A stretch of DNA of 64,000 nt from Dimorphilus gyrociliatus (GCA_904063045.1 CAJFCJ010000006.1:4232408-4296407), one strand, 5' to 3'. Shown: positions 4,552 to 64,000, counted from the first letter of the stretch. Numbers and translations are program-made. Notes: generated by a model from the letters alone, not told the origin.

Positions 4552-5868
4552 CTAAGTGTTACTACATTTTTTAAGATTTCTCAAAACTTCTTGTCCAATT
4601 GAAGTGCGTAATAGATTATTATTTGAGAATACCATTCCATGAAAATTTAAAACGTATACGCTAAATAGCTCTGGTAAATTGAAGTTGAACACAACTTCTT
4701 GATAATTTATTCCAGTATTCAAATTATTTGGTATTATTTCAATTTTATTCACAAGTTCTGTATTTACCATTTCATTTTGCATAAAGTCATTACTTTTTAT
4801 ATAAATTGGTAATGATTGACTTTTCTTTACAATTGCCGATACTAGTTGATTCTCTAGAAAGGTACTTTCTCTGTAATCTTCCTTAAAATACATATCAAAT
4901 TTACTAATGTTTAGAATATATTCTGATGTCTGAGTACAATAATATGATTTACAAGAGAATTCGGGCAATATTAAAATTCTTCCAAGCATTTTAGAGAGAA
5001 TTAATGCATTCAAAATCTGTAAAAATTCCATTTCACTATTTCTCTTTTGGTTATCTATAGCAAGATTCTTATAGGTTAAATACTTGTTTGTTGTACTTGA
5101 ATAATAGCTGTCAGTGTCTAATGTCCACATTAAATGTTCTTTAAGTCTATAAATCTTATTCAGCTTGTTCTTCGTCCAATTGTTATTAATGAGAATGCAA
5201 TTAGGGCATATGTTTTTACGATAGAGAGGATAAAGATTAAAAAAGTTGAATCCATTACGAGATATATTAGCGTCAAACGATAGAAACTTAATAATTCCTT
5301 TTCTTAGCAATAAACTCAAAGTTTTATTAATACTTTCTTTTGGATCTTTTTCAAATTTCGCTTTAAAAACTATATAATGAAACAAACTTTTACAAATTTT
5401 AGATGGTCTAATAAGATAAAATCCACTCTGGAAATTCTTACTACCATCAAGAGAAATAATATAATCGCAATCTAAACAAGAAATATATTTCCAAGGATTT
5501 TTGAGAAAGGAAACATCGGCATCACTTATTATTATTTCATAGTCATTTCTTATTGCTATGTAAACGATTCTAAATTTTATCTTCATTAATAAATCACTTC
5601 CAAATAAAGTGTCCTCGTTGGAATAGCTACTATAAGTCTCGTAATGAAAAATAGGAATATTTTTACTTTCAAAGTATTTACAAACATTCTCCTCTAAGCA
5701 TATTAACAAAAAATTCTCAATATTATTGCCTTTAATCGAAAAATAATAGAAATTCTCCGCTAACTCACTATTATTGTCATAAACAAATGTTAAGGTGATT
5801 TTCTTATCGTTTGAGAAACTTCTTAAAGCGTCGAGAAATTTGTTATTTTCAATCTTTGTATGGAGCAT
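4552..5868 (-). CDS. Nucleotide-diphospho-sugar transferase (PF03407 / GT77-like glycosyltransferase)
   Basis: Uninterrupted 438-aa ORF with DxD motif in IISDADVSFLKNPW, SGFYLIRP motif and C-terminal ALILSKMLGRILILPEFSC segment. An upstream TM exon, if any, was not found. Confidence 0.72.
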   Translation of the reverse strand: MLHTKIENNKFLDALRSFSNDKKITLTFVYDNNSELAENFYYFSIKGNNIENFLLICLEENVCKYFESKNIPIFHYETYSSYSNEDTLFGSDLLMKIKFRIVYIAIRNDYEIIISDADVSFLKNPWKYISCLDCDYIISLDGSKNFQSGFYLIRPSKICKSLFHYIVFKAKFEKDPKESINKTLSLLLRKGIIKFLSFDANISRNGFNFFNLYPLYRKNICPNCILINNNWTKNKLNKIYRLKEHLMWTLDTDSYYSSTTNKYLTYKNLAIDNQKRNSEMEFLQILNALILSKMLGRILILPEFSCKSYYCTQTSEYILNISKFDMYFKEDYRESTFLENQLVSAIVKKSQSLPIYIKSNDFMQNEMVNTELVNKIEIIPNNLNTGINYQEVVFNFNLPELFSVYVLNFHGMVFSNNNLLRTSIGQEVLRNLKKCSNT

Positions 5869-9708: not shown

Positions 9709-11216
9709 TTTCTCTAAAGATGATTTCTATGGATTACATAGACAATTCATTGATTAGCTTGATAATGAGATAACTGACAAGTTTATTAAGGTGGCCATCT
9801 TGGATTCAAAAAGCTAGGCTATTCAAACCAAATGTTACTTTCATAATTACTCTCGGCGACCATATTGATTTTGATACCAAAATCATTAAGTTAATTAACT
9901 AATAATATCTTTACTTACTAATAGAACAAAGTCGAAAATTCCAAAAGTTTCTAACAAGTAGTCAACACAAAAAAGAATAAAAATGGCGCTAATAATTCTC
10001 TTACATAGCTCAGTCAGTCACCCAAGTTACTTGAGCTCTATCAGAAATTGGCAACTTTCTATTGACCTCATTTATATGTCGCTTTTTTGTGGAAATGCAT
10101 GGTAGAAAGTCGATTTGACAGAAAAAATTGAAATCTATGCTATTTCCATGATTAACAGAAAATGATGATTGTTACAGTGTCAACAGACAAGCAGCATTTT
10201 GTTACATTCTGTACAAACAATCAAAAAATCTTGCATTATACGATTGTCATGGCAATATAAGTTATCTCAAACCACTTTGTTTAAGAGATAATGCATATAT
10301 TAGAAAATTTTATAAAGAAACTTTGTTTAGTTGTCTATCAATTCCAGTTTTTTTTAACTTATCAATTACAAAGTTCAGCTATAGTTGTATTACTAAAACA
10401 TTACGTTACATCAGTTAGCGAAAGCGATATTACTTGCAAAGAAAAACTTGTTTAAATACCTCTTAAATACAAAATTGTATTTAAAACAACTCAATACTTT
10501 GTTGAAGAAATTGTTATTGACTTGCAAACATACAACTTGAAAAGACATAATACTTTATATAAGCACACCCCATAAAATAACGTTTTATCCTGTAACAACC
10601 AAAGCAGATAAATCTTTAGAGTCAAATTGTAAAGTAAATTGTTAAGTAAACAGCTTGAAAATGGAATAAAATCGATTTTTCTACTTTTCCAATACTGATG
10701 TTGTTAAAGCGTATAACTTCTACTATAAGATAAGATTATTTCTGTAAAAGGAATACTTTTGATTTATTTAATATCTTAATTTTTCATAATTTCTTAATAA
10801 AAAACAAACGAATTATCATATAACAGTGTAAAATTTCAATTCTAAATAAAGTTGTTCTATATGAGTCAATGACTTACAAGAGATGCAAACGTAGAAGATG
10901 TAAAGATTCTTTCAATAATTGTTGACAATATTTTTACTTAAACTTTTAAGATCTGTATATTCAATATTATATTAATCGAAGATAAAAGAACTGCTCTTGT
11001 GTACATTGTGATCAAAAAATATATTAAAATATTCTATTTCAGAATACTAATTAACGTAATAAAGTTAATGACACTCCTTTGAAATCGCATTTTAGCTTTA
11101 CCACACCTATGTTTATAACAATTCTTATTGGACTAATATTCATGAGAAGTTTAGTATAAAAATTAATCCGTTCGTCTAATTCTTTATCATATTTTCTTCT
11201 ACAAGGAACTCTTTAA

Positions 11217-12302
11217 ATGATGAACAACTCTTCAAACGGTTCCACTAACGAAACTGTTGAATCAGAATCATATTTGCTGGGCCATGTTAAACATATTAAT
11301 GTGTCAGTTACTGTACTTTATTCCTTAGTATGGATTCTTGGAATTTTTGGAAATATTATGTGTTTTTTAGTAAATGGTAGACCAAAACTTAAACATACAA
11401 CAATGTCACTATATTTAAGAGTTATCGCCGTTTTTGACATCTTTGCAGTTTCTTTCCTTTGTATTTTTCAACCGTCTGAACTATACTTTGGCTTTTTCGG
11501 AGAAAACATTAACAAAGTTACTTTAAAATATCTATATTGCGTATTCTATTCCCATTGTTCATTTTTTACTGTGGTAGCTAGTGCATGGCTGGTTGTAGCT
11601 ATGACTTTAGACAGAAGTATCTACTTTTTCATACCTTTGAAGGCAAATAAGATTTGCACTAGATTTAGGGCTAAATTAATTTGTGGAGCAGTTATTGTAA
11701 TTAATTTTTTCCTTTTTATCTACTATTATCCCCTATATGGTCCTGGAAAAATGTCATACTTTATAAATAAAGAAAATAGATGGCTCTACTATTATGATTG
11801 TCAGGCAACATCGGAAAAAGGCACATTATTTGGACATACTATTATGTTGCAGTATATGATGTTTGTCGGATCTATAATACCGTCTGCACTCCTTATAATT
11901 GTTAATTCCGCAATTATAGTCACCTTAGCCAAATCAAATAAAGCGAGAAGTACAGTATCTTCAGCTAATACGGAAGAAGAATCTAAAAAACTTACTCAGC
12001 TTACGATTACTTTAGTAAGCATATCTTTGTATTACGTCTTCTCTACATTGCCACTGTATGCTAGTAACGTCTCACAGTACTATAGTGGTGCCTGGAGTTC
12101 TAGCTCAGAAGCGGATTTAAGATGGGTTATGTATTCTGGATATTTGGCACCCCTGGCGGCAAGCAACAATGCCTTAAATTTTTACCTCTATTGTTTAACG
12201 GGAGCGACTTTCAGAAATGAATTCAAGCGAATGATTGGTATAGCTAGTGATAAATCACATGCGACAGAAACTTCGAAAACAAATGTTTCAACAGTTTTAT
12301 AA
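11217..12302 (+). CDS. Class A (rhodopsin-like) peptide GPCR, FMRFamide-receptor-like group, intronless
   Basis: 361 aa, seven hydrophobic segments, N-terminal N-glycosylation sequons, GN in TM1, MTLDRS (DRY-like), NNALNFYLYCLTGATFRNEF in TM7/helix 8. Confidence 0.9.
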   Translation: MMNNSSNGSTNETVESESYLLGHVKHINVSVTVLYSLVWILGIFGNIMCFLVNGRPKLKHTTMSLYLRVIAVFDIFAVSFLCIFQPSELYFGFFGENINKVTLKYLYCVFYSHCSFFTVVASAWLVVAMTLDRSIYFFIPLKANKICTRFRAKLICGAVIVINFFLFIYYYPLYGPGKMSYFINKENRWLYYYDCQATSEKGTLFGHTIMLQYMMFVGSIIPSALLIIVNSAIIVTLAKSNKARSTVSSANTEEESKKLTQLTITLVSISLYYVFSTLPLYASNVSQYYSGAWSSSSEADLRWVMYSGYLAPLAASNNALNFYLYCLTGATFRNEFKRMIGIASDKSHATETSKTNVSTVL

Positions 12303-13286: not shown

Positions 13287-15108
13287 ATGAAGGTTTTAGC
13301 TGTGTGTTTAGCTTTATTTGCTGCTTCTCTCGCCCAAGTAGATTATGAAGGGTTAGTTGAAGAGTGTTGTTGTAAGATTCTCAATCATATTGAATTATAA
13401 TTTTCAGATATCATTTGGTGAATGTAGTTCCTGAAACTCCCGAACAAGTTGAATGGTTGCTTTATTTGGATGGTAAAGATGGTGTACGTTTTCTTATTCA
13501 TATCATTATTTTTCTATTGCCAACACCATCCTGTTTATTTTAGATTGACTTTTTGAAAAGTACTCATCAAGTCGGTAATGCCGCTGAAATTATCATCCCA
13601 AAAGATCAAGTTTCAAGAACTTATTATCTCTTTTCTAAGACCAATATGAGATACTTCACTGCATCAACCAATGTTGCAGAGTAATATATAATTGTTATAT
13701 TTATAAATTACCTCTCTCCTTCTTATCATATTAATCTTTCATCAGTGATTTGAAGAGAAATTTCCTTATGAGAAACGATAAACCAAAAGTTTTTAACATC
13801 AACGATTTCAATACTTTTGAAGACATCCTTGCTGGTTTGGATGATTTTGTTGCCAGATGCCCAAGCGGTGCTTCCTGTACTTTGGAAGATATCGGTGATA
13901 CTGTCGAAGGAAGACCAATCAGACTTTTGAAAATTACTAAGCCGGGAGATCGTAAAATTGTTTGGTTCGATTCCGCTATCCACGCCAGAGAATGGTTGGC
14001 TCCAGCTACCAATTTGAAATTGTTGGATGTCGTAAGTCAAAATTGAATGAAAATTAGATTTCCAACGTTGAATCATATTGGTACAATTTAAAAAAAAACA
14101 GATAATTTCCCAACAAGATTCCAACGCCGTCTCTCTATTTAACAAATACGATTTCTATTTCGTCATTATTATGAACCCAGATGGTTACGTTTACAGTTGG
14201 CAAGATTCCGATACTGTTTGTACTTTGATATATTTACAATTAACAATCATTTTCCATGAGATATTTTCATCTTTTAGAGATTATGGCGTAAGAATAGAAG
14301 CCCTAACGTTGGATCTTCATGTGTTGGTACTGATTTGAACCGTAACTATGATGCCAACTGGCTTAGTGAGTAATGACACTTTATAATACAAATATCATAT
14401 TAAATTTGAACTAAACTCAATAGGCGATGGAACTTCAACCAACCCATGTTCTTTTACTTATGGTGGAACTTCTGCTGCATCTGAAAAAGAAACTCAAGCC
14501 GCTCAAGTTTGATACTTTTAATTTTACTAAAATATTCATATAATAGTAAATGTGTCATAACCGTTTTTCTCAGAATTACCTAAGATCAATTGGTAGCAGA
14601 GTCCTTTCTTTGACATCTATTCACACAACTGCTGAAATGATCCTTATCCCTTATGGACACACTGATGACAACGGAGAGTGTGTTATTCCAGCAGATCATC
14701 AAAAACAAATGAGTGCAGCCAATGCTTTTGCAGATGCCATTGAAAACACCTTTTCCACCAGCTGGTAATGTTAAGTAAAATTTACCTTATTTATTTTTAA
14801 TAAAACAATATTTTCATTCATTGTCTAGGAAAAGAGGAACAGCTTGTCTTACCATCTGTATGTTTAATTTATTTCGATATTTTTCAATAAGATCTTTATT
14901 AATTTGTAAATAATTTAAAGATCCGGCCTCTGGAGCAACTATGGACTACGCCTACGACAAAGCTGGTATCACATACGCTTTCACACCTGAACTCCGTGGA
15001 CCTGGATTTGATCCACCAGCAAGTGCAATCCAACTAAGTTTCCAAGAAGTTTGGAATGGCGTTGTTGCTACTATTGCTAAAATCGAAGAATTAGAATCAA
15101 TGAACTGA
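13287..15108 (+). CDS. Secreted metallocarboxypeptidase (M14A, carboxypeptidase A-like), copy 1, multi-exon
   Basis: Signal peptide [16 protein letters not shown], prodomain, zinc ligands HAREW and SIH, NRN substrate motif, [10 protein letters not shown] (Tyr248; hydrophobic Met at position 255, CPA-type), catalytic Glu in PELRG, stop TGA at 15106-15108. Confidence 0.95.
13746..14367 (+). repeat. 622-bp near-identical block, inverted copy at 28163-28784
   Basis: Manual alignment with the reverse complement of 28163-28784: no indels, two introns (14032-14101, 14216-14277) identical, differences confined to exon codons. Confidence 0.93.
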
Positions 15109-22293: not shown

Positions 22294-23939
22294 AAAATAT
22301 CATGTAAATTGAAAATTATATATCTTACAATAGTTCTCCAACGACAAATATGGATATAAAGAGAGAAAGATTTTAGTTGTATTTAATTCATACACTAAAC
22401 CTTTCAGTATTGTCACGAAAAAATATAATATTCCTATATAAAACATATATAATAACATTTGAATTAATTATTTCAATATCATAAATGATAATACACAAAA
22501 AGGCTCTTTTTCATGTTTTCTTTTTTCTCTTAGCGTTTGACAAACTATAAGTTTTCTAAAGCAAGAAAAAATCAATGATCTAGCATTGATTATCATCTAA
22601 ATTTTTTATTAATAAATTGCTTATTCTCACTTATCAAGTAGCTAAAATAAACTAGAGTTATAATCTTCACAAACTATGTATATATATATATATATATATA
22701 TAAGCACTTAAAGAAAATAAATATTATCAGTATTAACTAACTTAGCTTTGAAAAATATGGCAGGTTTAAAAAATTTTTGGTTAAAGGATTAAGAGACCGA
22801 AAGGATTACTCAAGCCTATATAATAGGCTAATTGAATAAAGAGTGTCAGTATTTTAGTTACATGATCTTTTATATATAGTTTACAAAGATACTGCTCTAT
22901 TTTTAGATTTACTTGTATATTGAGATTATTTATAAGCCTAACAATTATGTTTTGTTTGTAGTATAGTTGCAAAAAAACAAACTAATAATCACCTATTGTC
23001 AAAATATAACAACGATCGGCTGTAAAAACTCATTTAGACTTATTTTTTAAGTGATTTATTAATCGCTTATCAACGTATGACATAGCTACAAGTTATAAGT
23101 TCCTATTAAAAGTATAAGCATAAATCATATATTGGAAAAAATTATCCTTAATTTAAAAATATGTCAATCATTCTAATTAATAATAAAACAAGAGTAAAAC
23201 AAAAAAACAAACAAAAAACTATAAACCTAATCTAATTAGCTTAATTTAATTTCGATGAACTAGATATAGGTTGAAATTTAGTAAGTATACAAAGTTTTAT
23301 TCTCTCTTAAATGAACTCTCGATTTTTGTTTACGCTTATTATATAATGAAAGAAGATAGAGTAAATATAAACAAGCACGAAATATAAAATGTTTGTATTT
23401 TCATTGTTTTATTATATATTTATATAAAAGAGATATTTACTTAATCTTTTTGTTTTAACATTGATTAATACTGAAGGAAGTAAAAATACAGGATTTATAG
23501 ATAAACAAAAATTTGCATATATTGTATTTCACATACCTAAAAGTTCTCTTTCTCTCTTTTTAGTTTAAACAAACAAATGATATATTTAGTTCAATTGTAG
23601 AATTCCTCCGTATCAAGTTAATTCTGGTATTTTTTTTATATTTTATAGTTTTGAACTCTATATGAAAAAATACTTAGGACTAATACTGATACAGTAAAAA
23701 TGAATTATGACAATAGAGATATAAAAAAAACTAAGTGTAATAAAATCAAAAGAAAGAGAGGATACTTTTTCATTATTTCTTTCTGTTGCTTTTTTTTTAA
23801 TAAAAAAAAAACATTTATTAATAAAAAGTTGAAAAATTTATAAGGCTTGAAGAGTTGAAAAACGGGGAGTGAGTTCTTTTTGTGAGTGTTTGTGAGGGGA
23901 GGAGGGGGGGAGTGGAAGGGTGGCGTAGGGGATTTAAAC

Positions 23940-24509
23940 CTAGTATGCTGATTCAACTTTTAAGCCGGGTATTCCAGAACGTGAATAAAACGTATCCCTT
24001 ACTAAGCAGGTTCTTCCATGTATTGGTTTCGGTGGACTAGGTATATTCTCATTCATTTTCCAACCATATTCCCATGACGAGCAAACTTGGTAGTGATATT
24101 TTACATCGGGACCTGGTATGGTTCTCTCTCTTAGGTACAACCACCTACCTTTAGATTCTTTTGAAATACCATCGTATAATAAACCTTTTACCCGAGGTTG
24201 AACATAGTTCATTGTTTCGTATTGTTGAAAATCACTTCCAGGTTTAGCTGTGTCAATACTTATCAGTGGAGGTCGGCTTTTCTTTTTGTTAAATCGAGCT
24301 TCTGGGGCGTCCTTTACTCTCTGCATAGCTGGACCAGGTTTAGGGGCGGCTAATTCCAATTTCTTCTTGTAAACTTCGAATTGCCTAGACCTTACTGGTC
24401 CAGACTTTTGCCTATCTTCAAAAGCTGATAAACGGGCTGCTCTTTCTTTATCATAAGTTTCCGTCATCGACGAAATAAGAGCCGTAGTCATTGGTTTTTT
24501 ATCCCTCAT
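23940..24509 (-). CDS. SPMIP1: Sperm/ciliary microtubule inner protein 1 (ATP6V1FNB family)
   Basis: 189-aa single-exon ORF with LLYDGISKESKGRWLYLRER...YHYQVCSSWEYGW, matching the family signature LLYEGIS...GRY.YL..R...P..SF.YGW. Confidence 0.8.
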   Translation of the reverse strand: MRDKKPMTTALISSMTETYDKERAARLSAFEDRQKSGPVRSRQFEVYKKKLELAAPKPGPAMQRVKDAPEARFNKKKSRPPLISIDTAKPGSDFQQYETMNYVQPRVKGLLYDGISKESKGRWLYLRERTIPGPDVKYHYQVCSSWEYGWKMNENIPSPPKPIHGRTCLVRDTFYSRSGIPGLKVESAY

Positions 24510-26177
24510 CCTCTTATTTATGTTTTCAATCTATTTTCATTTAACTTTGTATTCGAACTGTTCAAATCTTTTTGTTGAACTCCTTAGAAACCGTGACGCT
24601 GTGGATCACATGACTAATATCACGTGACTAGAGGCTATTGGCTTGTTGGCTAAGAAGAGCATACAGCTTGAAGTAATCTATTATTGCTATCTTTTGTAGA
24701 CCACTTTACCTGCATGAATGGATCAAAGAGATCAATAAATATTGATTTTCTCTCATCGATTATCCCATAATATTCAAATAAGATATTCTGAATATCTTGT
24801 TGACTATAATTACATCTATTGAATGTACATGTTTTTTATTATTAATACAGCTCGGTAATACAAATACTATCAACTTTTAACTGAAAGAAACATTCAAAGT
24901 ACAGTCGAACAGCTAGTTAATTAATAAGAGTCACCTTACTTGATTACTATTTACCTTTCAAATACTTATATAAATAATCATAAAATATTATAAAAAGAAA
25001 TGTATAACATTAACAAAAGAAAGTCACTGTTAGGTCATTAAAGGGAGTAATCTGTCTCTTTTCATGAAATACACGTTAATTGAGTTCAATCAATATATTT
25101 AAATATCCCTAACTTCATCTTTTTCTCTGATATTTTTCATCCTTCTTTTCGTCATTTTAGATATTTGAAAGGGGATGAGGATGACGGGCTAAGAGTAGGA
25201 AGAAAAAAACTTAAGCTACTATCAGTTACGCAAACAAAAAGACTTAATTTTATCGTTTAGAAGCTGAGATAACAATAGGAGACATCTGAAAAAAGATATC
25301 CCAATGGAATAGGATGTTTGAGCTCGAAAGGCAGACTATTTCTAGGAAATTGAGCAAAAGTAGCTAGCTAAATTAGCTTAATTATAATTGCTCTTCCGTT
25401 GAATTATATTAATTATGATAGCTATCTTATTAAGAAATATAATCGATTAAGATGACACCTAGCGGATATAAATAAATATTCTATTATAACTGAATCTGTT
25501 TTATAAATTTTCTGTATAGATTTTAGTCTGAGACAAATGTCAATATGAACCTATTGCCTAGATAAAGATAGTTCGGCCTTGCTCTAATAGTTTGCCGATC
25601 AAGATCAACGTTCTCTGTGTCATCATCCTAACATTCATGATCTCTTTACAACTATGTCTATATCGAGACGATACGCTATCGAGATAAGGAACAATCATCT
25701 TTCTATTATTCTTTATAAAGAATAAACAACAAATAGACTCCTTTGTTGTGCATTGTTCTATTAACCTTATCTAAACTCATTCGGACAACTAATTAAATTC
25801 ATTTTTCTTCTCCTTGCTTCTCTCTTAAATAAAATAGTCCAATTTATATGTATATAAACTATGTACAGTTATCGATCTTTAATAATATCATCGTTTCGCT
25901 CTTCGTATAACTCTCGTGCAAAAAAAAACAACTTTCGAATTCTAAATGATTGCTATTGTTTTTTTAATAAAAGAAATTATAAGAGATGTTATCTCTCTCA
26001 ACAATACCTGTGTGAAAAAGTAATTTCATTGTCTAGGCTTACATTTTGATGTTCCATATATTCTCACAAATGCAATTAACTTTATCGTTAAAATATTCTT
26101 TATATAAATTAATTGTCTAACCTTCTAACTCTAACTTGGTAGAGGATCTCGATAGTAGATAGATCAAAAAAGAAAGA

Positions 26178-27483: not shown

Positions 27484-29277
27484 TTATTGTTTACCTTCAA
27501 GTGTTTCAATTTGGGCCATAAGATCTACAACGCCATTCCAAACTTCGTCAAAACTTGGTTGAATTGCACTTGCTGGTGGATCAAATCCTGGTCCGCGAAG
27601 TTCAGGAGTGAAAGAATATTTAATTCCAGCGGTATCATAAGCAAAATCCATAGTGGCACCAGAAGCTGGATCTGTAAATATAATTTTACCATGAAAACCT
27701 TAGTCCCTATAATAGTATTCATGAATACTAACAGATGGTAGTGCATACTGTTCCTCTATCCCATGAGGTTCCGAAAGTGTTTTCGATACCATCGGCGAAG
27801 GCATTAGCGGCGGCCAATTGATCTTGATGGTCAGATGGGTAAGCACACTCTCCGTTGGCATCAGTGTGTCCGTAAGGGATAAGGATCATTTGAGCAGTTG
27901 TGTGGATTGTAGTAAGAGAAATAATATTACTACCGATGTTACGAAGGTAGTTCTGTAGAGAAGAAAAAATATGTTTTAATTATTTTAATAACTATTGAAT
28001 AAGTTGAAAATTCTTACTTGAACGGCTTGAGTCTCAACTTCAGAAGCTGCAGAAGATCCACCATAGGTATCAGAGCATGGATTGGTTGAAGTTCCATCGT
28101 CTTTATAATAAATAGATTTTCGTGAACATTTAAATTATTGAATTAATAATCTGCTGTAACTTACTAAGCCAGTTGGCGTCATAGTTACGGTTCAAATCAG
28201 TACCAACACATGAAGATCCAACGTTAGGGCTTCTATTCTTACGCCAGAATCTCTAAAAGATGAAAATATCTCATGGAAAATGATTGTTAATTGTAAATAT
28301 ATCAAAGTACAAACAGTAGTGAAATCTTGCCAACTGTAAACGTAACCATCTGGGTTCATAACAATGACGAAATAGAAATCGTATTTGTTAAATAGAGAGA
28401 CGGCGTTGGAATCTTGTTGGGAAATTATCTGTTTTTTTTTAAATTGTACCAATATGATTCAACGTTGGAAATCTAATTTTCATTCAATTTTGACTTACGG
28501 CGTCCAACAATTTCAAATTGGTAGCTGGAGCCAACCATTCTCTGGCGTGGATAGCGGAATCGAACCAAACAATTTTACGAGTTCCTGGCTTAGTAATTTT
28601 CAAAAGTCTGATTGGTCTTCCTTGGGGACTATTACCGATATCTTCCAAAGTACAGGAAGCACCGCTTGGGCATCTGGCAACGAAATCATCCAAACCAGCA
28701 AGGATGTCTTCAAAAGTATTGAAATCGTTGATGTCAAATACTCTTGGTTTATCGTTTCTCATAAGGAAATTTCTCTTCAAATCACTGAAAGAAAGCATTT
28801 GATATATTAAATGAAAATTATGTGAAAATGGATAGGTAGGATAAAAAGTAAATCTTACGCAGCAGCATTCTCAGTAACTGTAAAGTATCTCATTTCGAGC
28901 ATAGAGAAGAGTTTGTAGCTGCTTGAAACTTGTTCCTTGGGAATAATAATTTCAGCGGCAACACCAACTTTGCGAGTGCTTTTCAAAAAGTCAATCTAAA
29001 TAAATCGCAAAGAAAGTCAAATATATTCAAATGGTTAAAAAGTCAGAATAAGAAAAATAGCGTACTCCATCTTTTCCTTCTAATTGCATCAGCCATTCAA
29101 CTTGATGTTCAGTATCAGGAATCACATAGACGACATGATATCTATATAATATAAGTATATTAATGAAACAAATAATAGATGAAAGAAGACTTGAATAACC
29201 TACCCTTCGTAGTCTGGTGTATCTTGAGCGGCAAAAACCGCAGCCACAAAAGCTAAACAAATCGTAAGCAACTTCAT
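27484..29277 (-). CDS. Secreted metallocarboxypeptidase (M14A, carboxypeptidase A-like), copy 2, multi-exon
   Basis: Signal peptide [52 protein letters not shown]; stop TAA at 27484-27486. Confidence 0.95.
28163..28784 (-). repeat. Inverted copy of the 622-bp block at 13746-14367
   Basis: See partner block; same length, identical introns. Confidence 0.93.
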
Positions 29278-50339: not shown

Positions 50340-52916
50340 ATGCCGAGACGCGCTGCCGCAAAAACCACTGTTAAACCTTCAAAAGCTGTAAAAAAAGTAA
50401 AGGGTAAAGCTTTAGTAGATGAGGTTGAACTGTCCAAGGAACAAGAGAATGGTGTAACAGAGAATGTCGACGCTTCGGGAGAAGGTTCCCAAGAAGAAAT
50501 GGACGAGAATGTTGTTACAAGAATACAATTGGAAGTAAATGGAAAGGATGAGCCCATCAAACGCAAAGCAGATGAGAATGATGAAGATGCCACAGAAGAA
50601 CCCCCAACAAGCCCAGTGAAAAGATCTAAAAGAACAATCAAGAAGATAGTTGATAAAGACGAAGATTCCATGTCCGAAAATACCGATAAAATTGAAGAAG
50701 GTGAGGAAAATCAAAAAACACCTCCTCCAAAGGGAAAAAAAGGAAGACAACCTAAAAAAGCACAGAAAAATGAAGAGAACGGTACTAAAGCAGTAAAGCC
50801 AAAAAAGGGCCAAACCACGAAAAGAACTTTTGAAAAGACCGAAGGTGACACTGCCGACTCAGATAACAACGAAAAAGAAGACATCGATGACGAAGTACTT
50901 GAAGCTAAGCCTAAAAGAGGTCGTCCTGCTAGAAAAGGCGCAAAATCATCAGAACAAAATGGGGTAAACGAAGAGACTCAAGCTAAAAGAGGTCGAGGTA
51001 AGGCTAATAAACAGGCACCTAAGAAAGGAAATAAAGTAGAAGAAAATGATGTTCCAGAACAGAACGGTCAAACTGACGAAAAAGAAGATGAAATAAAAAA
51101 ACCAAGAGGTCGTGGAAAAAAAGCTGAAGTAAATGAAGAACCACAGTCTAAACCCAAGGCAAGAAGAGGCAGGCAAGCCAAACCCGACCCAAACAATGAG
51201 AAAAGTGGTGATAATGAATCTGAAATCGCCGAAGAGCCCAAACCAAAGCCAAAAGGTAGGCGAGGAAGACAAAAAGCTCGTGAACCTGAGGAAGAAGTTG
51301 AGGAAACTGGTGACCATGAGTTGGAAACAATTGAAGAAGTGAAAGCTAAGCCCAAAGGTAGACGGGGAAGAGCGAAAGCCCGTGAATCATCTGAAGATCG
51401 CGAAGAAAATGAAGATTTAGGGACAGCAATGGTTGAAGAGGAAGTAAAAGTCAAACCAAAAGGTAAACGAGGAAGAGCAAAAGCCCCTGAACCTTCCGAG
51501 GAACCCGAAGAAAATAATGAGTTGGCGACAGATGTGGCTGAAGAAGCCAAAGCCAAACCAAAAGGTAAACGAGGAAGGGCAAAAGCCCCCGAACCATCTG
51601 AAGAAAATGATGAATTAGCAGCAGAAATGGCTGAGGAAGAAAGCAAAGTCAAACCAAAAGGTAAAAGAGGAAAAGCAAAAGCTCCTGAACCAGTTGAAGA
51701 ACCAGAAGAAAACGATGAGTTATCACCAGAAATAGCTGAGGAAGAAATTAAAGCCAAACCAAAAGGTAAAAGAGGAAAAGCAAAAGCTCCTGAACCTGAG
51801 GAAGAAACTGAAGAAAATGACAAGGAATCAGAAGCTGGAGAGGAAGAAGTGAAAGTCAAACCTAAAAGCAAGAGAGGTAGACCAAAAGCACGCGAGCTTC
51901 AGGAAGAACCTGAGGAGAATGGTGAACATGAATCAGAAACTGTTGAAGAAGAAGCGAAGCCGATAGAAAAAGAAGAATCAGAAACTAGTGAAGCTGTTTC
52001 TCACAATGAAAAATTAGATGATCAAAATGAAAAACAAGAAGATTCAAAAAAGGCAGCCAAAGGAGAGAAAAGATCTCGTAAACCAAAAAAAGAGGAACCA
52101 GAGCAGAATGGTAATGACAAGCCTAAAGTTCAGAGGAAGAGAGCACCAAAGCTTCTAAGTGACGACGTAGAATACACTAGAAAAAACGATTACGATATCA
52201 TCAAATACCTCACGGAAGAAACCTGGAAGGAAGCTTTAGATTCAGAGATGAAAAGGAACTACTTTCTATGCCTGCAAGACCAATTGGGAGAAATCAAAGA
52301 CTCAAAGTTCTTCCCCCCTGAGGAATTGGTATTCAACGCTTTTAAGTAAATTTTTAAATTAATATTTGGTGTTTTACTTATTGAATTTTCCAACAGCCTC
52401 ACCCCCTTAGATAAAGTTAAGCTAGTAATTTTGGGTCAAGATCCATATCACGATGATGGACAAGCTCACGGTTTGGCTTTTTCAGTACCCGAGGGAGTAG
52501 ACATTCCAAAATCGTTGAAAAACATCTATAAAGAACTCTCATCAGACATTGATGGTTTTGAAGCACCAAATTCTGGTTGCTTGACGAAATGGGCCGAACA
52601 AGGCATTTTTCTACTTAATACAGTCTTGACTGTCCTCCCACACGAAGCTAACTCTCACGCTCAAATTGGTTGGCAGGCTTTCACTGAACTTGTGATAAAG
52701 TTGATCAGTGATAAGTGCACCAACGTGGTGTTTGTGTTATGGGGAAAACAAGCTCACTTGAAAGGCGAACAGATTGATGAGGAAAAGCATTTGGTCTTGA
52801 AAGGGGCCCACCCTTCACCATTAAGCGTTACTAAGTTCATGGGCTGTAAACACTTTTCGAAAGCAAACGAATATTTGAAGGCCAATGGTAAAGAGCCAAT
52901 CGATTGGAAATTATGA
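50340..52916 (+). CDS. UNG: Family 1 uracil-DNA glycosylase with ~620-aa low-complexity N-terminal extension, two coding exons
   Basis: Catalytic GQDPYH and HPSPLS motifs intact, [17 protein letters not shown]. The catalytic-domain N-part ([10 protein letters not shown]...[11 protein letters not shown]) is at the end of the 669-aa ORF; intron 52348-52396. Confidence 0.95.
51150..51920 (+). repeat. Coding tandem repeat, about 8 units of ~33 aa (~100 nt), consensus [30 protein letters not shown]
   Basis: Read directly in the UNG N-terminal ORF: successive KPK(G/A/S)(K/R)RG(R/K) cores separated by acidic spacers. Confidence 0.9.
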
Positions 52917-58156: not shown

Positions 58157-59644
58157 ATGGCTCGACTTGTAGCCCCTCCAACTAAATTTGCGCATCCAGA
58201 ATGGGTTATTTCTAACCAAACCCAATATGCCAACGCCGAAGCTGAAAGGGCGGCAGCGGAACGTTTGTTTGATGAGAGTGGACGGTTAATAGAGGAAACT
58301 GACTCGAGAGCAAAAAGAACCCAAGCCGATGTTAACAAGAAATTAGGTTTGTAGAATTTAATCTATAGCTTTTTATAAGATTTTGACAGCTCTAAATCAA
58401 AATTGTTTGAATTTTTAAATTTACTTTTCCATTATCTATTCACAGATCAAAGAGTAAACGATGTTGAGTATTGGAACAAAGAGGTTGATGATAAGATGGA
58501 TGAGATGAAGAAAGAAACCGAGGCACTAGACGCATTCTTGGCCAGGATTGATAATGCCATCTTGGGTTGTAAGGAACCTTTACACATTGCTGAAGCTTGC
58601 TTAGCCAAGAGAAGAGCTAGACAGAATATCGAATTAGTTCATGATGATGCAGAAAAGCATCAAATTAAAGAAATGGAAGTTCTTCATGGCGTTATGGAAT
58701 TATTAACCAGATTGAAAGAGCAAACTGTAGAACAACTAAGGTTAGTAAGAAAACCAAAGAAATTCATCTATCTATAATATTCTTTTAAAACTAAATAAGA
58801 GATTTTCATTATGTTTATATTATTGGTGAAACATGAATATTATATTTGCAAATCAGATTGAACCGAAAGGCTGAGAGGCAATTGGAAAGGGATTTGGCTG
58901 ATAAATTTCAAGCTTTGTCGATTGATAAACATAATCGACAATTAACTGACCACTCTTCTGAAATTCGTTTCAAGAATGGAGCCGCAAGGATTGAAGGACA
59001 GTTAGTAATTTTTGAAAATGTTAATCAGTAGATTTTATTAACACATGCTAAAATAATTCTACAGTACAACTGATCCTGAACAATGGCAAAGCTTCTCCAG
59101 GGATAATATCGAATTCACTGAAAAGCAAAGACAAAATTCAGCGCAGCTTCGTTCTCAAATAGACAACTATCTTCAGGCTGTCGCTAATGATTTAGAGAAT
59201 CAGACAAGGGATACCAATCAAGCTTATGAAGATCGTATTGCTGAGGTTCGACAGGCCAAAGAAAAATTGGAGGAGCATTTAAACAAAGTTTTCGGTCAAA
59301 TTCGCGAAATGGAGGATAACAAAAGGAGATTGGAAAAAGCAATCTACGAAAAGGAAAATCCTCTAAAATTAGCCGAAACAAGATTGGACTACAGAACAGA
59401 ACGACCAAATGTGGAAAATTGTAGAGATAGCGCCCAATACAGATTGGTTGAAGAGGTTGGAGAATTGCACGCCAGTTTGGCTAGTTTACACGATAGACGA
59501 GCCAAAACTATAGACAGTTTGAAAGCTCTAAAGAGAAGGAAACTGGATTTGGAAGAAGACATTCAACTCAAAGGCGAAGCTTTGTGCCTAGATGAATCGG
59601 AATGTATGGCTATGAGAAAGAGCATTCATTATCGGGCTTATTAG
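58157..59644 (+). CDS. TEKT1: Tektin-1, multi-exon
   Basis: MARLVAPPTKFAHPEWVISNQTQY...DVNKKL.QRVNDVEYW matches the TEKT1 N-terminus; DLADKFQALSID; tektin nonapeptide RPNVENCRD. Confidence 0.9.
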
Positions 59645-60209
59645 TCAATTAAGTAAAAGAAAGAGAACATTTAATACATCATAAATCGCTAATGTTTTTG
59701 GATATTTTAAAATAATTACACGTTTTCATCACTGTGTAGAAGAAATAAATACAAAAAAAGCATAAAATCTCTCATCTATTGTTTCGCTAGCAATCATTTC
59801 GTACAAAAATAAGTATTAATCTCATTAGGCAAAATACGCTTGTGTTAACTTGCTAGCTAATTAATTAATTAGGAATAAAACATAAAATTCCTAGATTATA
59901 AGAGGGATAAGCGCAATACATTACGAAAAGTGTAGATGCAATTACTCTATTTCCTTAAATGGAAATTATCTTCAGTTATATCCTTAGTGTTAATGCTTTG
60001 TATCCTCTATACAGTTATGTTAATTACATATTATCACACCGAAGCTCATTATGTCAATATCCTATATTTCAAAAATATCCTCTATTACGGTAATTAACTC
60101 CCAGGATATATTTGCGGGTAAGATTTCCTAGAGCCCAATTGGTATTTCTGATATAAACAACTCACAGTTTATTCTGCTTATGTATTGATAAAAAGAAGAT
60201 CTTAAAATT

Positions 60210-61954
60210 TTATTCTTCACAATAAAAAGGTAATTTATTTATTTCTAAAGAATTTTTTACTCCTATAAAGCGGTAATTTTTAACCTCAGCTTCTTTCCTT
60301 CTAATTAACTGCCACTGTCCATTTTCTCTCTTTACAGCTACATTATGCCACTGAAATATTAAAGACTTTTTAATTAAAGGTATTCATATTTTTACTATGA
60401 ATTGTAAAGTTACAGGTGTTGCTGTATCTCCATCACCAAGTAGATTAATTCCAACTTTCTTAATTGAATCGTGTGAATGGATAGACAAGCGAATATGCGT
60501 TGGGAATAAATCTTCCATAAAATCACTATACACTTGATTTCTTTGCATCTGGGAATGAGAAAGAGGGAAATATATTTTATATGTTAGAAGGATCATTTAT
60601 TTATTATTTTTTATACCATTTTATAAGTGATACAATCGCATTCCTTATCGTCTGACTCATTAGATGCAAATTTCTTTTCTTCTTTCACAAATTGTTTAAA
60701 AGTTTCAAATACAACTTTTAAGTTTCCATTCTCCTTTGACAAAATAGAAAAGCAAAATATTACTCTGCTGATTTTCATGATTAATTATTTACAGATATAT
60801 TTTTCTTTGTCTCTTCTAAACTAGGTTTATAAACTAGATCAAGGAATTCTCTTTTAGCATCACTATTATAAATTTCATTAGGTAAGAAATCGTCTAATCC
60901 AACCCATGATATATTCTATTAAAAAAGAGAAAAAAGGATTTGTAGAATAACGAGTATTTTTGCAATAGTTACATTACTGGGAAGAAGATTAACAACAGCA
61001 TGTCTATACTGAAAAATAATAGAATCTTCAACATTTAAAAGCCGGCAATAGATTCTACCATCACTGCAAATAACGAATCTAACACCAGGAGGGTATATTT
61101 CCTTCACGCTTTCACACCTATAAAAGAATATTCACTAATCTAAGATCATGTATACTAAGTTTAAATTACCAGTCTTCTAGTCTTTTAAGGCAAACGTATT
61201 CTCCCATGTCAGGTAAATGGCCTATAACCTTTTCGTCGCTAGTCGATTTAAAAGGGAAACCAAGTAAAACAAAAGGTATTGGTAAGTTTCTTTTTGCGTA
61301 GGTTGAAACTTTAATTTTAAAGTTGCTTCTTGCCTCTTGACTAGACCATTTATCAACAGTTGGTCGTTTTCTAATTTCTTCAAACTTTTTAATGAATTTT
61401 TCTATTAAATCTTCATCAATATTGTCAACTTGAACAATTTTCGAACTTTTTATACTCTTCCATTTAAAATGATTAATAATTAATTGATTAATAAGAGTTT
61501 GAAAGCCTTTAATTATTTCAATTTCTGTATTATCGCCTATTTGAAGAATTCCAATTGTTCTATTTTGATATTCGATAGGATAGTCTAAAAAAAGTAATCG
61601 AAATTTTTAATTTTTTTAATCTCCTCTAAAAAATCAAGGTTAGAAAACTTAACCGTAAAATGTAAACTCATCATGTTTCCTGTGTTGTACATCAATTAAT
61701 TCTCTGATATCATTGCAGCAATCTGAAATTTACTTAATATTATTTTTTAAACTAGCTATACAAAATGTTTTCATTAACCATTTTCAGGTACAAGTTGAAC
61801 AAAGCAGTTTAGTCTTTTACTTAGTCTTTTTAATAGCTTTTCAATGGTTTCGTTAATATTTACACTTAGATAACTAAAGAGAAAAAATTTTCTATTAATA
61901 TTCATTTTTGTATTCTAATGGAAAAAGAATTTACCTTTCTATAGTATAAGACAT
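60210..61954 (-). CDS. Isocyanide (isonitrile) synthase, PvcA/IsnA/Dit1 family (PF05141-like), 9 exons, 419 aa
   Basis: Exons (minus): 61954-61935, 61873-61779, 61722-61654, 61584-61170, 61117-60973, 60915-60793, 60733-60617, 60548-60414, 60350-60210; total 1260 nt, open throughout. Motifs PIPFVLLGFPFKSTSDEKVIGHLPDMGE, IYPPGVRFVICSDGRIY, RNQVYSDFMEDLFPTHIRLSIH, KVGINLL, ATP|WHNVAV. Confidence 0.9.
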
Positions 61955-62506
61955 ATTTGCGATATGTTTTTAGCAATTATCTTGCGATTTTTTTCAAGAC
62001 AATAGTTTACTGTATGATAAGTTGTGAACGTGTGTGTCTGTGTTTATATACTTATGAAAGAACTGATAATGAAGGTGATCTAAAAGTTCTAAAATTTGAG
62101 TTTTAGGCCTACACAGGCACTTTTACTGGAAAAGTGGCATTTTGCCTGGTTTTTTCCCCCTCTTTTATGCTCGGTAGTAATAAAACTCAATTACCACTAC
62201 TAATAACATATGCTTTTTAATCAATAAACCGATAGTATGTATGTAAACATACCATAAAGATTAAATTTTACTTTTACGGAACAGGAAATGGAATTGTACA
62301 TTTGTTTACCGGTTTATAAAAAAAACCCTACAAAATATTGGCGGGTAATTGTACAGCATAATTTGTGTGCAACTTATCATAAAAATAGTGTTGTTTGACT
62401 TAAAACAAGTATTTTAAGGCTCCATCAGTAAGCTTTTATTCAGATAAAAGATACGTATTGAAATATCTGGATAAAAAAGGGATTAGAATTGATCTCTACT
62501 ACAATA

Positions 62507-64000
62507 ATGAGCGATAATCCAATACCTCCAAACTTTTTTCTTGCTGAAGTTCAAGCAGCTTGTAATGCTCTAGGTAAGATAATATATACTTTCCTGTTGT
62601 CAATAGCATATTTACAATCTATTTAATTCGTAATAAAATAATTGCTTTTTATAAAATAATATAGGTTGTGCAGAAGAGGATGGGTATCACAAAGAACCTG
62701 ATTGCTTGGAAACAGTAAAAGATCTCATTAGATTCTTGAAGCGTGAAAATGAGTATTGCGATGTTCGACGTTTTTTGGGAGAATGTCAAATTGTGCAAAC
62801 AGATTTAATACCTATCATAAAATATAACAAAGGAGATAAAGAATTATTGGAAACTACTATAAGGCTTCTAGTAAATCTAACTCAACCAGCCGTAAGCTGT
62901 TTTGATAATGAAGTAAGTAATTTCAAGTAGGAATGTAATTGATATTTACTGAAATAACTTTTTTTTCAGGTTCCAACACACAAAACGGTTTTAAAGTACT
63001 ATATAGAGGTACAATCTCACTTAAATCGATATAAAGAATCGTTTTGTGATGAGGCAGTAATGGCAATTTTGTCGGAGACACTTCAAGATATAATAAGCCT
63101 GGATTGGGAAAGTCAAAGAGAGAACGATCGTCTCTTGCTCGAGCGCATATTACTCCTGTTAAGAAACGTCTTACACATAGTTATAGATCATAAAACAGAT
63201 ATTCGCACGGATGACGACGCCAATATTCATGATCAACTTTTATGGGTTATGCACAAGAGTGGTATGGAAGATCTTCTATTGTATTTAGCTTCGGCAAATG
63301 AAGAAAGTTTCTGTATGCACGTTCTTGAAATCGTCTCACTTATGTTCAGGGAACAGAATGCCAAAGAATTAGCCACAGTTGGCGGAGATAAAAGTAAAAT
63401 TCATAAACGAAAAGAAGAGGAGGAATTGGCCAGACTTAGAATAACCGAAGAGGCTAAGAGAAAAGAGATGTTAGCGAAATTAGGATCGAGGCATAGTCGA
63501 TTTGCAGGAACAGTAATAATAAAAAATTTTAAATCTATCAGTGACAAAGATATGATACTTCATAAAAATATTAAGCATACAAAGGATATAAACTTTGATG
63601 CGCATAAAACTGCGAGAAGAGCACCTAAGAATAGAGCACCTATTAAAGATAGAGAAGTATCTAGGAGATCAACTTTAAGCATTCGATTATTTTTGAAGGA
63701 TTTCTGTTCGCAATTCTTAGAAAATGCTTACAATACACTTATGAGAAATGCCAATCATGCTCTCATGCGTTCAAAAGCTCAGGAGAACGATGATACATAC
63801 TTTCTTTGGGCAATGAGATTTTTTATGGAATTTTCAAGATGCGCGAATATGAAATTAGATTTCGTAAGCGAAACTATGAATATGTCAACATTTCACTACG
63901 TAGAAACTCATTTAATAAACTATCACGAAACAATAACCATTGATAAGAAAAACGCCATTCTATGGTCAAGAAGACTTCATTTGGCATTAAAAGCCTATCA
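62507..64000 (+). CDS. TIMELESS: Timeless (mammalian-type TIM/timeout), 5' part, runs off the window
   Basis: Exons 62507-62573, 62665-62912, 62970->64000: ACNALG...YHKEPDCLETVKDLIRFL...RLLVNLTQPA...LLERILLLLRNVLH...DDDANIHDQLLW...HVLEIVSLMFREQ...SRHSRFAG. Confidence 0.95.

Follow-up and report, generated by a model that had tools for sequence, protein, structure and literature searches.

The locus and its gene model

The stretch of DNA analyzed here (the window) comprises 64,000 nucleotides (nt) from the annelid Dimorphilus gyrociliatus (GCA_904063045.1, CAJFCJ010000006.1:4232408-4296407). On its minus strand, at 60210-61954, lies a gene predicted to encode a stand-alone isocyanide synthase (ICS) of the DIT1/PvcA/IsnA family (PF05141), placed between a tektin-family gene and TIMELESS. 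From ATG to stop, the gene consists of nine exons that splice to 1260 nt, corresponding to 419 codons plus a TAA stop without any internal stop, and its ATG at 61954 is the first after an in-frame stop. The eight GT-AG introns measure, in order, 61, 56, 69, 52, 57, 59, 68, and 63 nt, sizes that fit the median intron of 66 bp in the published D. gyrociliatus genome (PMC7854359). Their guanine-plus-cytosine (GC) content is 18 to 25%, below that of the exons. As exon GC is 30.2% against 30.7% for the window, the gene is not compositionally distinct. The original prediction, made from the sequence alone, had given these coordinates, nine exons, 419 amino acids, and GT-AG introns of 52 to 69 nt, and the spliced model reproduces all of them exactly. 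Over-spliced models with 11 exons, which came from automatic enumeration of splice paths, were replaced by the manual nine-exon model after checking by translation and RNA.

The coding sequence begins with three short exons: exon 1 (61935-61954, 20 nt), which holds the start codon (61954-61952) and is joined to exon 2 by a junction in an RNA contig; exon 2 (61779-61873, 95 nt); and exon 3 (61654-61722, 69 nt), the last two given by both the spliced model and the RNA. Exon 4 (61170-61584, 415 nt) carries the remainder of a lineage-specific N-terminal region and then the start of PF05141, with the motifs PFVLLGFPFKS and KVIGHLPDMGE, whereas the IYPPG...CSDGR block falls in exon 5 (60973-61117, 145 nt); both exons are backed by Pfam matches and RNA junctions, for exon 4 at both ends. 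The variable middle of the domain is encoded by exon 6 (60793-60915, 123 nt), which is present in the RNA and aligns within the family profile, followed by exon 7 (60617-60733, 117 nt), also present in the RNA. Intron 6, which precedes exon 7, matches in position and phase intron 1 of DgyrCDS8449, a paralog described below. Exon 8 (60414-60548, 135 nt) has a Pfam match and runs from HIRLSIH to TP, and exon 9 (60210-60350, 141 nt including the TAA stop) supplies the WHN... C terminus with a weak Pfam match. The family motifs therefore read FVLLGFPFKS, KVIGHLPDMGE, IYPPG...SDG, IRLSIH, and TP-WH in the spliced translation, the last being divided by intron 8; all five had been predicted, in this collinear order and with this split. 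About 40 nt past the stop, on the same strand, an AATAAA that may act as a polyadenylation signal can be read at 60168-60173. Upstream, a divergent intergenic region of about 750 bp (61955-62705) separates the ICS start (61954, minus strand) from the first TIMELESS-domain open reading frame (ORF), which starts at 62706 on the plus strand.

Transcription of the gene is documented by a public run (X1), which holds a 5,868-nt RNA contig that matches the window with zero mismatches and skips precisely introns 1 to 7. The intron ends in this contig are CT..AC on the plus strand, that is, GT..AG on the ICS strand. The same contig continues unspliced from ICS exon 1 across the intergenic region (61935-62100 and beyond) toward TIMELESS, which points either to divergent transcripts with overlapping 5' ends or to two transcripts fused by the assembler.

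Family assignment and conserved residues

The translated exon pieces were scanned one by one against the Pfam profile PF05141 (DIT1_PvcA), for which the gathering score is 26.4 bits. Exon 4 (47.4 bits, profile positions 1-45), exon 5 (39.7 bits, positions 48-93), and exon 8 (41.7 bits, positions 195-244) gave collinear matches, each past the gathering score, and the weak match of exon 9 covers positions 244-271. Relatives were gathered by an exhaustive search with exon 4 and compared with the spliced protein. Full-length relatives score up to 198 bits against it, and a profile built from 14 of them aligns with residues 13-419 at 330 bits. Furthermore, 26 of the 29 family-conserved positions (columns at least 85% conserved among 90 relatives) are kept, including all five invariant residues (P172, K174, D187, D219, and R348) and the near-invariant E190, H352, K359, and W374. 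No structural or mechanistic paper naming catalytic residues of the DIT1/PvcA family was found in the literature, and the comparison bears on conservation rather than, strictly speaking, on active-site integrity.

With PF05141 matched, the family motifs (FPxKS, LPDMxE, SDGR, RLSIH, and TPWH) collinear, and the conserved residues kept, the initial assignment to the isocyanide synthase family stands. As a whole, the best explanation is that this is an authentic nuclear gene of D. gyrociliatus that encodes a stand-alone member of this family, a reading to which we give a probability of roughly 0.8.

Host integration and conservation in a relative

The ICS gene lies inside the 5.53-Mb scaffold CAJFCJ010000006.1 (GCA_904063045.1), at about 4,292,617-4,294,361 by offset arithmetic; 2,570 bp of this scaffold were identical to window positions 22940-25509. 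Its neighbors, given as TEKT1 and TIMELESS in the original prediction, are borne out as a tektin-family gene and TIMELESS. A tektin-family gene (58403-59644, plus strand; PF03148 at 96 and 135 bits on two exon ORFs) is placed tail-to-tail with it, and TIMELESS, from 62706 on the plus strand, is its head-to-head neighbor across the intergenic region described above.

The search led from a protein fragment (P0001/P0096), which shares 66% identity with exon 4, to an 11.9-kb contig from a related species (run SRR23372229), in which the order is TIMELESS, two PF05141 ORFs, and tektin, with the same head-to-head layout as in D. gyrociliatus. When exon 4 alone was searched against a protein collection clustered at 90% identity, only this fragment of the related species matched. 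The ortholog on the contig has 420 amino acids, the same nine exons and phases, and GT-AG introns of 53 to 92 nt. It shares 65% amino acid identity and 72% coding nucleotide identity with the window gene, with 0.217 nonsynonymous (dN) and 1.50 synonymous (dS) substitutions per site, giving a dN/dS of 0.145, a ratio that is rough because dS is near saturation. The intact frame, the identical architecture, and the sevenfold excess of silent change indicate purifying selection. Together with the conserved ortholog and the RNA, this selection excludes contamination, misassembly, and a decaying pseudogene, the last having been a candidate that was rejected on the ortholog with the same nine exons, the dN/dS, and the spliced RNA. 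Consequently, the host integration claimed in the original prediction is borne out by host-size introns, host-like GC, the large scaffold, synteny and selection in a relative, and spliced RNA, and we regard the ICS gene as almost certainly a real host gene of D. gyrociliatus. The published genome paper mentions no isocyanide or pyoverdine genes (PMC7854359).

A second predicted isocyanide synthase and the weight of divergence

The best named match to the window gene is DgyrCDS8449 (CAD5119865.1), encoded on scaffold CAJFCJ010000011.1 of the same genome. Since it comes from the same species as the window, it is a paralog and not the ortholog of another animal, and the D. gyrociliatus genome carries at least two ICS paralogs. 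DgyrCDS8449 has 346 amino acids in three exons, with two phase-0 introns after R206 and P297. In a ten-sequence alignment, these introns share columns with window introns 6 (after S289) and 8 (after P373), all in phase 0. By our own estimate, taking five window introns over about 870 nucleotide positions, the chance of such a double coincidence is about 3 in 100,000. Because two intron positions are shared, the duplication postdates intron gain in the ICS gene. The Atlas predicted model of DgyrCDS8449 has a predicted template-modeling score (pTM) of 0.84 and a template-modeling score (TM) of 0.85 to a fungal Dit1 cluster. No shared repeats were seen when the window was compared with the paralog locus by blastn, an uninformative outcome.

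Several observations weigh against the reading of the window gene as an annelid gene for a stand-alone isocyanide synthase. Scanned singly, exons 6 and 7 have no Pfam match. The RNA contig begins with the last base of exon 8 (60414), which leaves intron 8 (60351-60413) and exon 9 outside its coverage; of the eight predicted junctions, seven are thus exact in RNA, and the eighth is supported indirectly, as its codon boundary and phase are common to the ortholog and to the second intron of DgyrCDS8449. A tblastn search of the window with seven ICS-dioxygenase fusion proteins recovered the ICS exons only, with no TauD-type (PF02668) part and no second ICS copy, in keeping with the earlier statement that the window holds no partner of the PvcB/IsnB type. 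The window ICS protein was not returned by public protein searches, though its paralog was, and the list from the profile search is no census, as it missed members of its own query; the protein may be unannotated in public gene sets. Finally, three conserved positions are changed in the window protein (P to L169, N to S177, and A to T325) and in its ortholog, and the stem branch in the tree is long (0.83).

These last two features leave room for altered specificity or function. They also speak for a diverged paralog that, after duplication, evolved fast, acquired the lineage-specific N terminus of 150 residues, and had its catalysis changed or lost, the protein being turned, for example, to the binding of an amino acid or a sugar phosphate. 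DgyrCDS8449 retains the consensus P, N, and A at the three positions, and residues 1-150 of the window protein have no detectable homolog except in the ortholog, both of which fit such a history. However, the five invariant residues and E190, H352, K359, and W374 are all kept, and the dN/dS reported above reflects constraint over the whole protein; we consider a loss or change of catalysis rather unlikely. The window gene product is probably a catalytically active isocyanide synthase, a claim we make with less assurance than that of a real host gene.

Phylogeny and origin

The maximum-likelihood tree rests on 61 domain sequences, a set from which long branches, redundant fungal rows, and the fungal XanB-type clade had been taken out. 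In this tree, the window gene and its ortholog group together (100/100) and are joined by DgyrCDS8449 (94/77). The annelid genes then group with P0012 (99/88), an ORF without introns whose metagenome contig is sparse and eukaryote-like, and all fall within a clade of 16 rows (98/89). This clade also holds short environmental transcripts and proteins in which an RNA-recognition motif (RRM) is fused to the ICS domain. Several of its members lie on eukaryote-like contigs, and in others the ICS gene sits beside MFS transporters on gene-dense contigs, with 59% GC in both of those whose DNA was read. A further member, P0080, is a 420-amino-acid intronless ICS (contig L003, 1843-3105) on a 16-kb contig with 38% GC from run SRR13325274. 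Because that contig also carries a rhodopsin-type G-protein-coupled receptor (GPCR) that bears the DRY and NPxxY motifs, as well as a PDZ protein, it is probably of animal origin and probably represents an independent, second case of an animal lineage bearing an ICS gene.

Apart from the annelid genes in this tree lie the clades of classical bacterial (cyanobacteria and Pigmentibacter PvcA), phage-associated, oomycete/protist, and fungal Dit1 sequences, as did the fungal XanB-type clade in an earlier tree of 92 rows. Forcing the annelid genes to group with the sampled bacterial PvcA-like clade cost 33 log-likelihood units and was disfavored by the approximately unbiased (AU) test (p = 0.023), with the test group having been named after the tree was seen. 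A recent bacterial transfer, or bacterial or fungal contamination of the assembly, has in its favor that the family is mainly microbial (PMC5974471), but it conflicts with this test, with the eight spliceosomal introns, host-like GC, and spliced RNA, and with the tektin-TIMELESS placement in a 5.5-Mb annelid scaffold and the same synteny in a second species. We regard this explanation as effectively refuted; the ICS gene is not a recent bacterial transfer. It is old, given its eight introns, the paralog with two shared intron positions, and the ortholog in a relative.

Since the 16-row clade mixes microbial-looking and animal-looking sequences, transfer and patchy vertical descent are not separable here. 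An ancient eukaryotic or animal gene, inherited vertically with massive loss and without any transfer, would account for the high intron density (8 in 1.26 kb), for the several clade members on eukaryote-like contigs, and for the intronless P0080 on an animal-like contig in the same clade. Nevertheless, the tree does not place the two animal-like lineages as sisters, the clade includes the microbial-looking 59%-GC contigs with ICS beside MFS genes (one also with a type III polyketide synthase), the only named animal protein among the 30 clusters looked up is the worm's own paralog, and published surveys name no animals (PMC5974471). We consider vertical descent alone an unlikely history. With a clade of mixed members and two animal-like lineages that are not sisters, it is somewhat likelier that an ancestor of the dinophilids or of the annelids received the gene by an old transfer, and we lean toward this over patchy vertical descent. 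As for the old horizontal transfer raised as a possibility in the original prediction, the gene is old and lies outside the sampled bacterial PvcA-like clade. Of the features looked for in a domesticated transfer, it has host introns, host composition, synteny in a relative, and a signature of selection, but nesting inside a named donor group was not shown.

The search for relatives also gave several observations on the family at large. Four environmental proteins (P0020, P0102, P0122, and P0142) carry the RRM (PF00076) fused to the ICS domain, an architecture that we did not find described in the literature consulted. On two groundwater metagenome contigs with a GC content of 59% (L007, 1921-8846, and L008), ICS genes adjoin MFS transporter genes and form a candidate biosynthetic cluster in the clade closest to the annelid genes; L007 additionally carries a type III polyketide synthase gene upstream. 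Contig L004 encodes a 424-amino-acid ICS (10001-11275) among dense small same-strand genes that include a holin, in a phage-like arrangement, and this synthase may be carried by a phage. P0016, at first a candidate for an intron-split relative, proved to belong to a fungal-type dit cluster with a P450 and not to an animal, and it was rejected.

Partners and likely chemistry

Nothing follows the ICS domain in the window ICS protein, and no dioxygenase is fused to it. The larger ORFs in its neighborhood belong, by Pfam, to a glycosyltransferase-like protein, a GPCR, a short-chain dehydrogenase, a ubiquitin-like protein, tektin, and TIMELESS, which suggest no pathway. As no partner enzyme is fused to it or encoded in the window, the window enzyme is of the stand-alone type like Dit1 or IcsA (PMC5974471).

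Enzymes of the DIT1/PvcA family use ribulose-5-phosphate to turn the alpha-amine of an amino acid into an isonitrile (PMC7949033, PMC13005658), and tyrosine isonitrile, the Dit1-type product, has been argued to be a stable natural product rather than a mere intermediate toward N-formyl tyrosine (PMC13005658). By analogy, the window enzyme would probably take as substrate an amino acid, most likely tyrosine, tryptophan, or another aromatic one, and condense its alpha-amino group with the keto carbon of ribulose-5-phosphate. The sugar would then be cleaved, leaving an alpha-isocyano acid, which might persist as an isonitrile or, as with yeast Dit1, hydrolyze to an N-formyl amino acid. Given that no dioxygenase, P450, or transporter is fused or adjacent, the product would be a simple isocyano or N-formyl amino acid unless it is modified by the products of unlinked genes.

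The end use of such a product could also resemble that of Dit1. An N-formyl-tyrosine-type product might be cross-linked by unlinked oxidases into the egg cocoon, the eggshell, or the cuticle, an explanation that departs from our reading only in what becomes of the product. The analogy is with yeast Dit1, a member of the same family that gives N-formyl tyrosine for the dityrosine spore wall (PMC5974471; PMC13005658), and which, like the worm gene, stands alone without a fused dioxygenase. Against this, neither a Dit2-type P450 nor a Dtr1-type MFS transporter adjoins the window gene or its paralog, and the annelid genes lie outside the fungal Dit1 clade. We regard a structural role of this kind as a tentative option, clearly less probable than not.

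Other features of the window

Other parts of the window hold features that are distinct from the ICS gene. An inverted duplication (13539-15096 and 27496-29000), with its arms about 12 to 15 kb apart, has a 643-nt core that is 96% identical (13742-14384 versus 28146-28788); it bears an apparent carboxypeptidase-type coding exon, with long antisense ORFs on the opposite strand. Two intact single-exon ORFs have no exact record and may be unannotated genes: one at 11217-12302 (plus strand) for a rhodopsin-type GPCR of 361 amino acids, for which a homology search gave neither a copy of itself nor a named protein but only a 63%-identical protein from a relative, and another at 4552-5868 (minus strand) for a nucleotide-sugar transferase-like protein of 438 amino acids. 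The SPMIP1 ORF (189 amino acids) is at 23943-24509, and an identical sequence is recorded on scaffold CAJFCJ010000006.1 of GCA_904063045.1. At 50340-52916 (plus strand), the catalytic domain of a uracil-DNA glycosylase gene is preceded by a very long and repetitive N-terminal extension, about 600 amino acids rich in lysine and glutamate.

Novelty and significance

To our knowledge, ICS-type isonitrile biosynthesis has been documented only in bacteria, in fungi, and in a small number of protists. Natural isonitriles act as ligands of copper and other metals and as antimicrobials, and the isonitrile terpenes of sponges are cyanide derived. Full-text literature searches found no description of an animal ICS gene. 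A survey of the family from 2018 includes fungi, oomycetes, a single amoebozoan, and a single moss, and touches on "metazoans" only briefly and without giving names (PMC5974471). The enzyme family is well known, and it is the animal host that is new.

There is about an even chance, in our estimation, that dinophilid annelids make amino-acid-derived isonitriles, or the N-formyl products of their hydrolysis, by means of their own small ICS family. If so, theirs would be the first isonitrile pathway to be encoded by an animal; it would owe nothing to symbionts or to the cyanide-derived isonitrile terpenes of sponges, and its product might serve in metal binding, antimicrobial defense, or the hardening of egg envelopes. 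An animal ICS family that is expressed and under selection would extend the growing list of animal-encoded enzymes of secondary metabolism. It would also offer a dated example of a microbial-type gene turned into a normal animal gene, with eight introns, a shared promoter region, a duplication, and kept synteny. D. gyrociliatus is a culturable laboratory annelid with a compact genome, which makes this a directly testable case.

Comparison with known systems

It is useful to set the window gene beside the ICS systems described so far. Yeast Dit1 and the single-domain fungal enzymes (e.g., IcsA of Aspergillus fumigatus) resemble it in being eukaryotic, in consisting of a stand-alone PF05141 domain, and in having an N-terminal extension before the catalytic domain. 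In contrast, the fungal Dit1-type enzymes form a separate clade in the tree, and fungal DIT1 is typically arranged head-to-head with a P450 gene (DIT2) and near an MFS transporter, as on the fungal-type contig L010, whereas the neighbors of the worm gene are TIMELESS and tektin.

Bacterial PvcA and IsnA (PDB 3E59; 9DH4/9DHM/9DHN) share with the worm gene the same Pfam domain and the conserved motif set, and the paralog DgyrCDS8449 matches PvcA with an E value of 3e-31 over about 265 residues. However, the bacterial enzymes are intronless, measure about 315 to 330 amino acids, and are usually either fused to a TauD-type dioxygenase (PvcB/IsnB) or encoded in one operon with it. The worm gene has an extra N-terminal region of about 150 amino acids relative to them and no dioxygenase in the window.

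By score, the closest full-length relatives are the environmental ICS proteins of the clade described above (P0012, P0007, P0010, P0080, P0020, and P0102), which reach 160 to 200 bits and have a similar length of 420 to 450 amino acids. Unlike the worm gene, all those examined are single intronless ORFs, and some are fused to an RRM or lie beside MFS genes. The nearest named relative in the tree is DgyrCDS8449, which has the same PF05141 domain and likewise stands alone without a dioxygenase domain. Even so, the two annelid paralogs are distant, with a path of about 2.1 substitutions per site between them, and they differ in size and architecture (346 amino acids in 3 exons versus 419 in 9), with most of the N-terminal extension missing from DgyrCDS8449 and a different set of unrelated genes as its neighbors.

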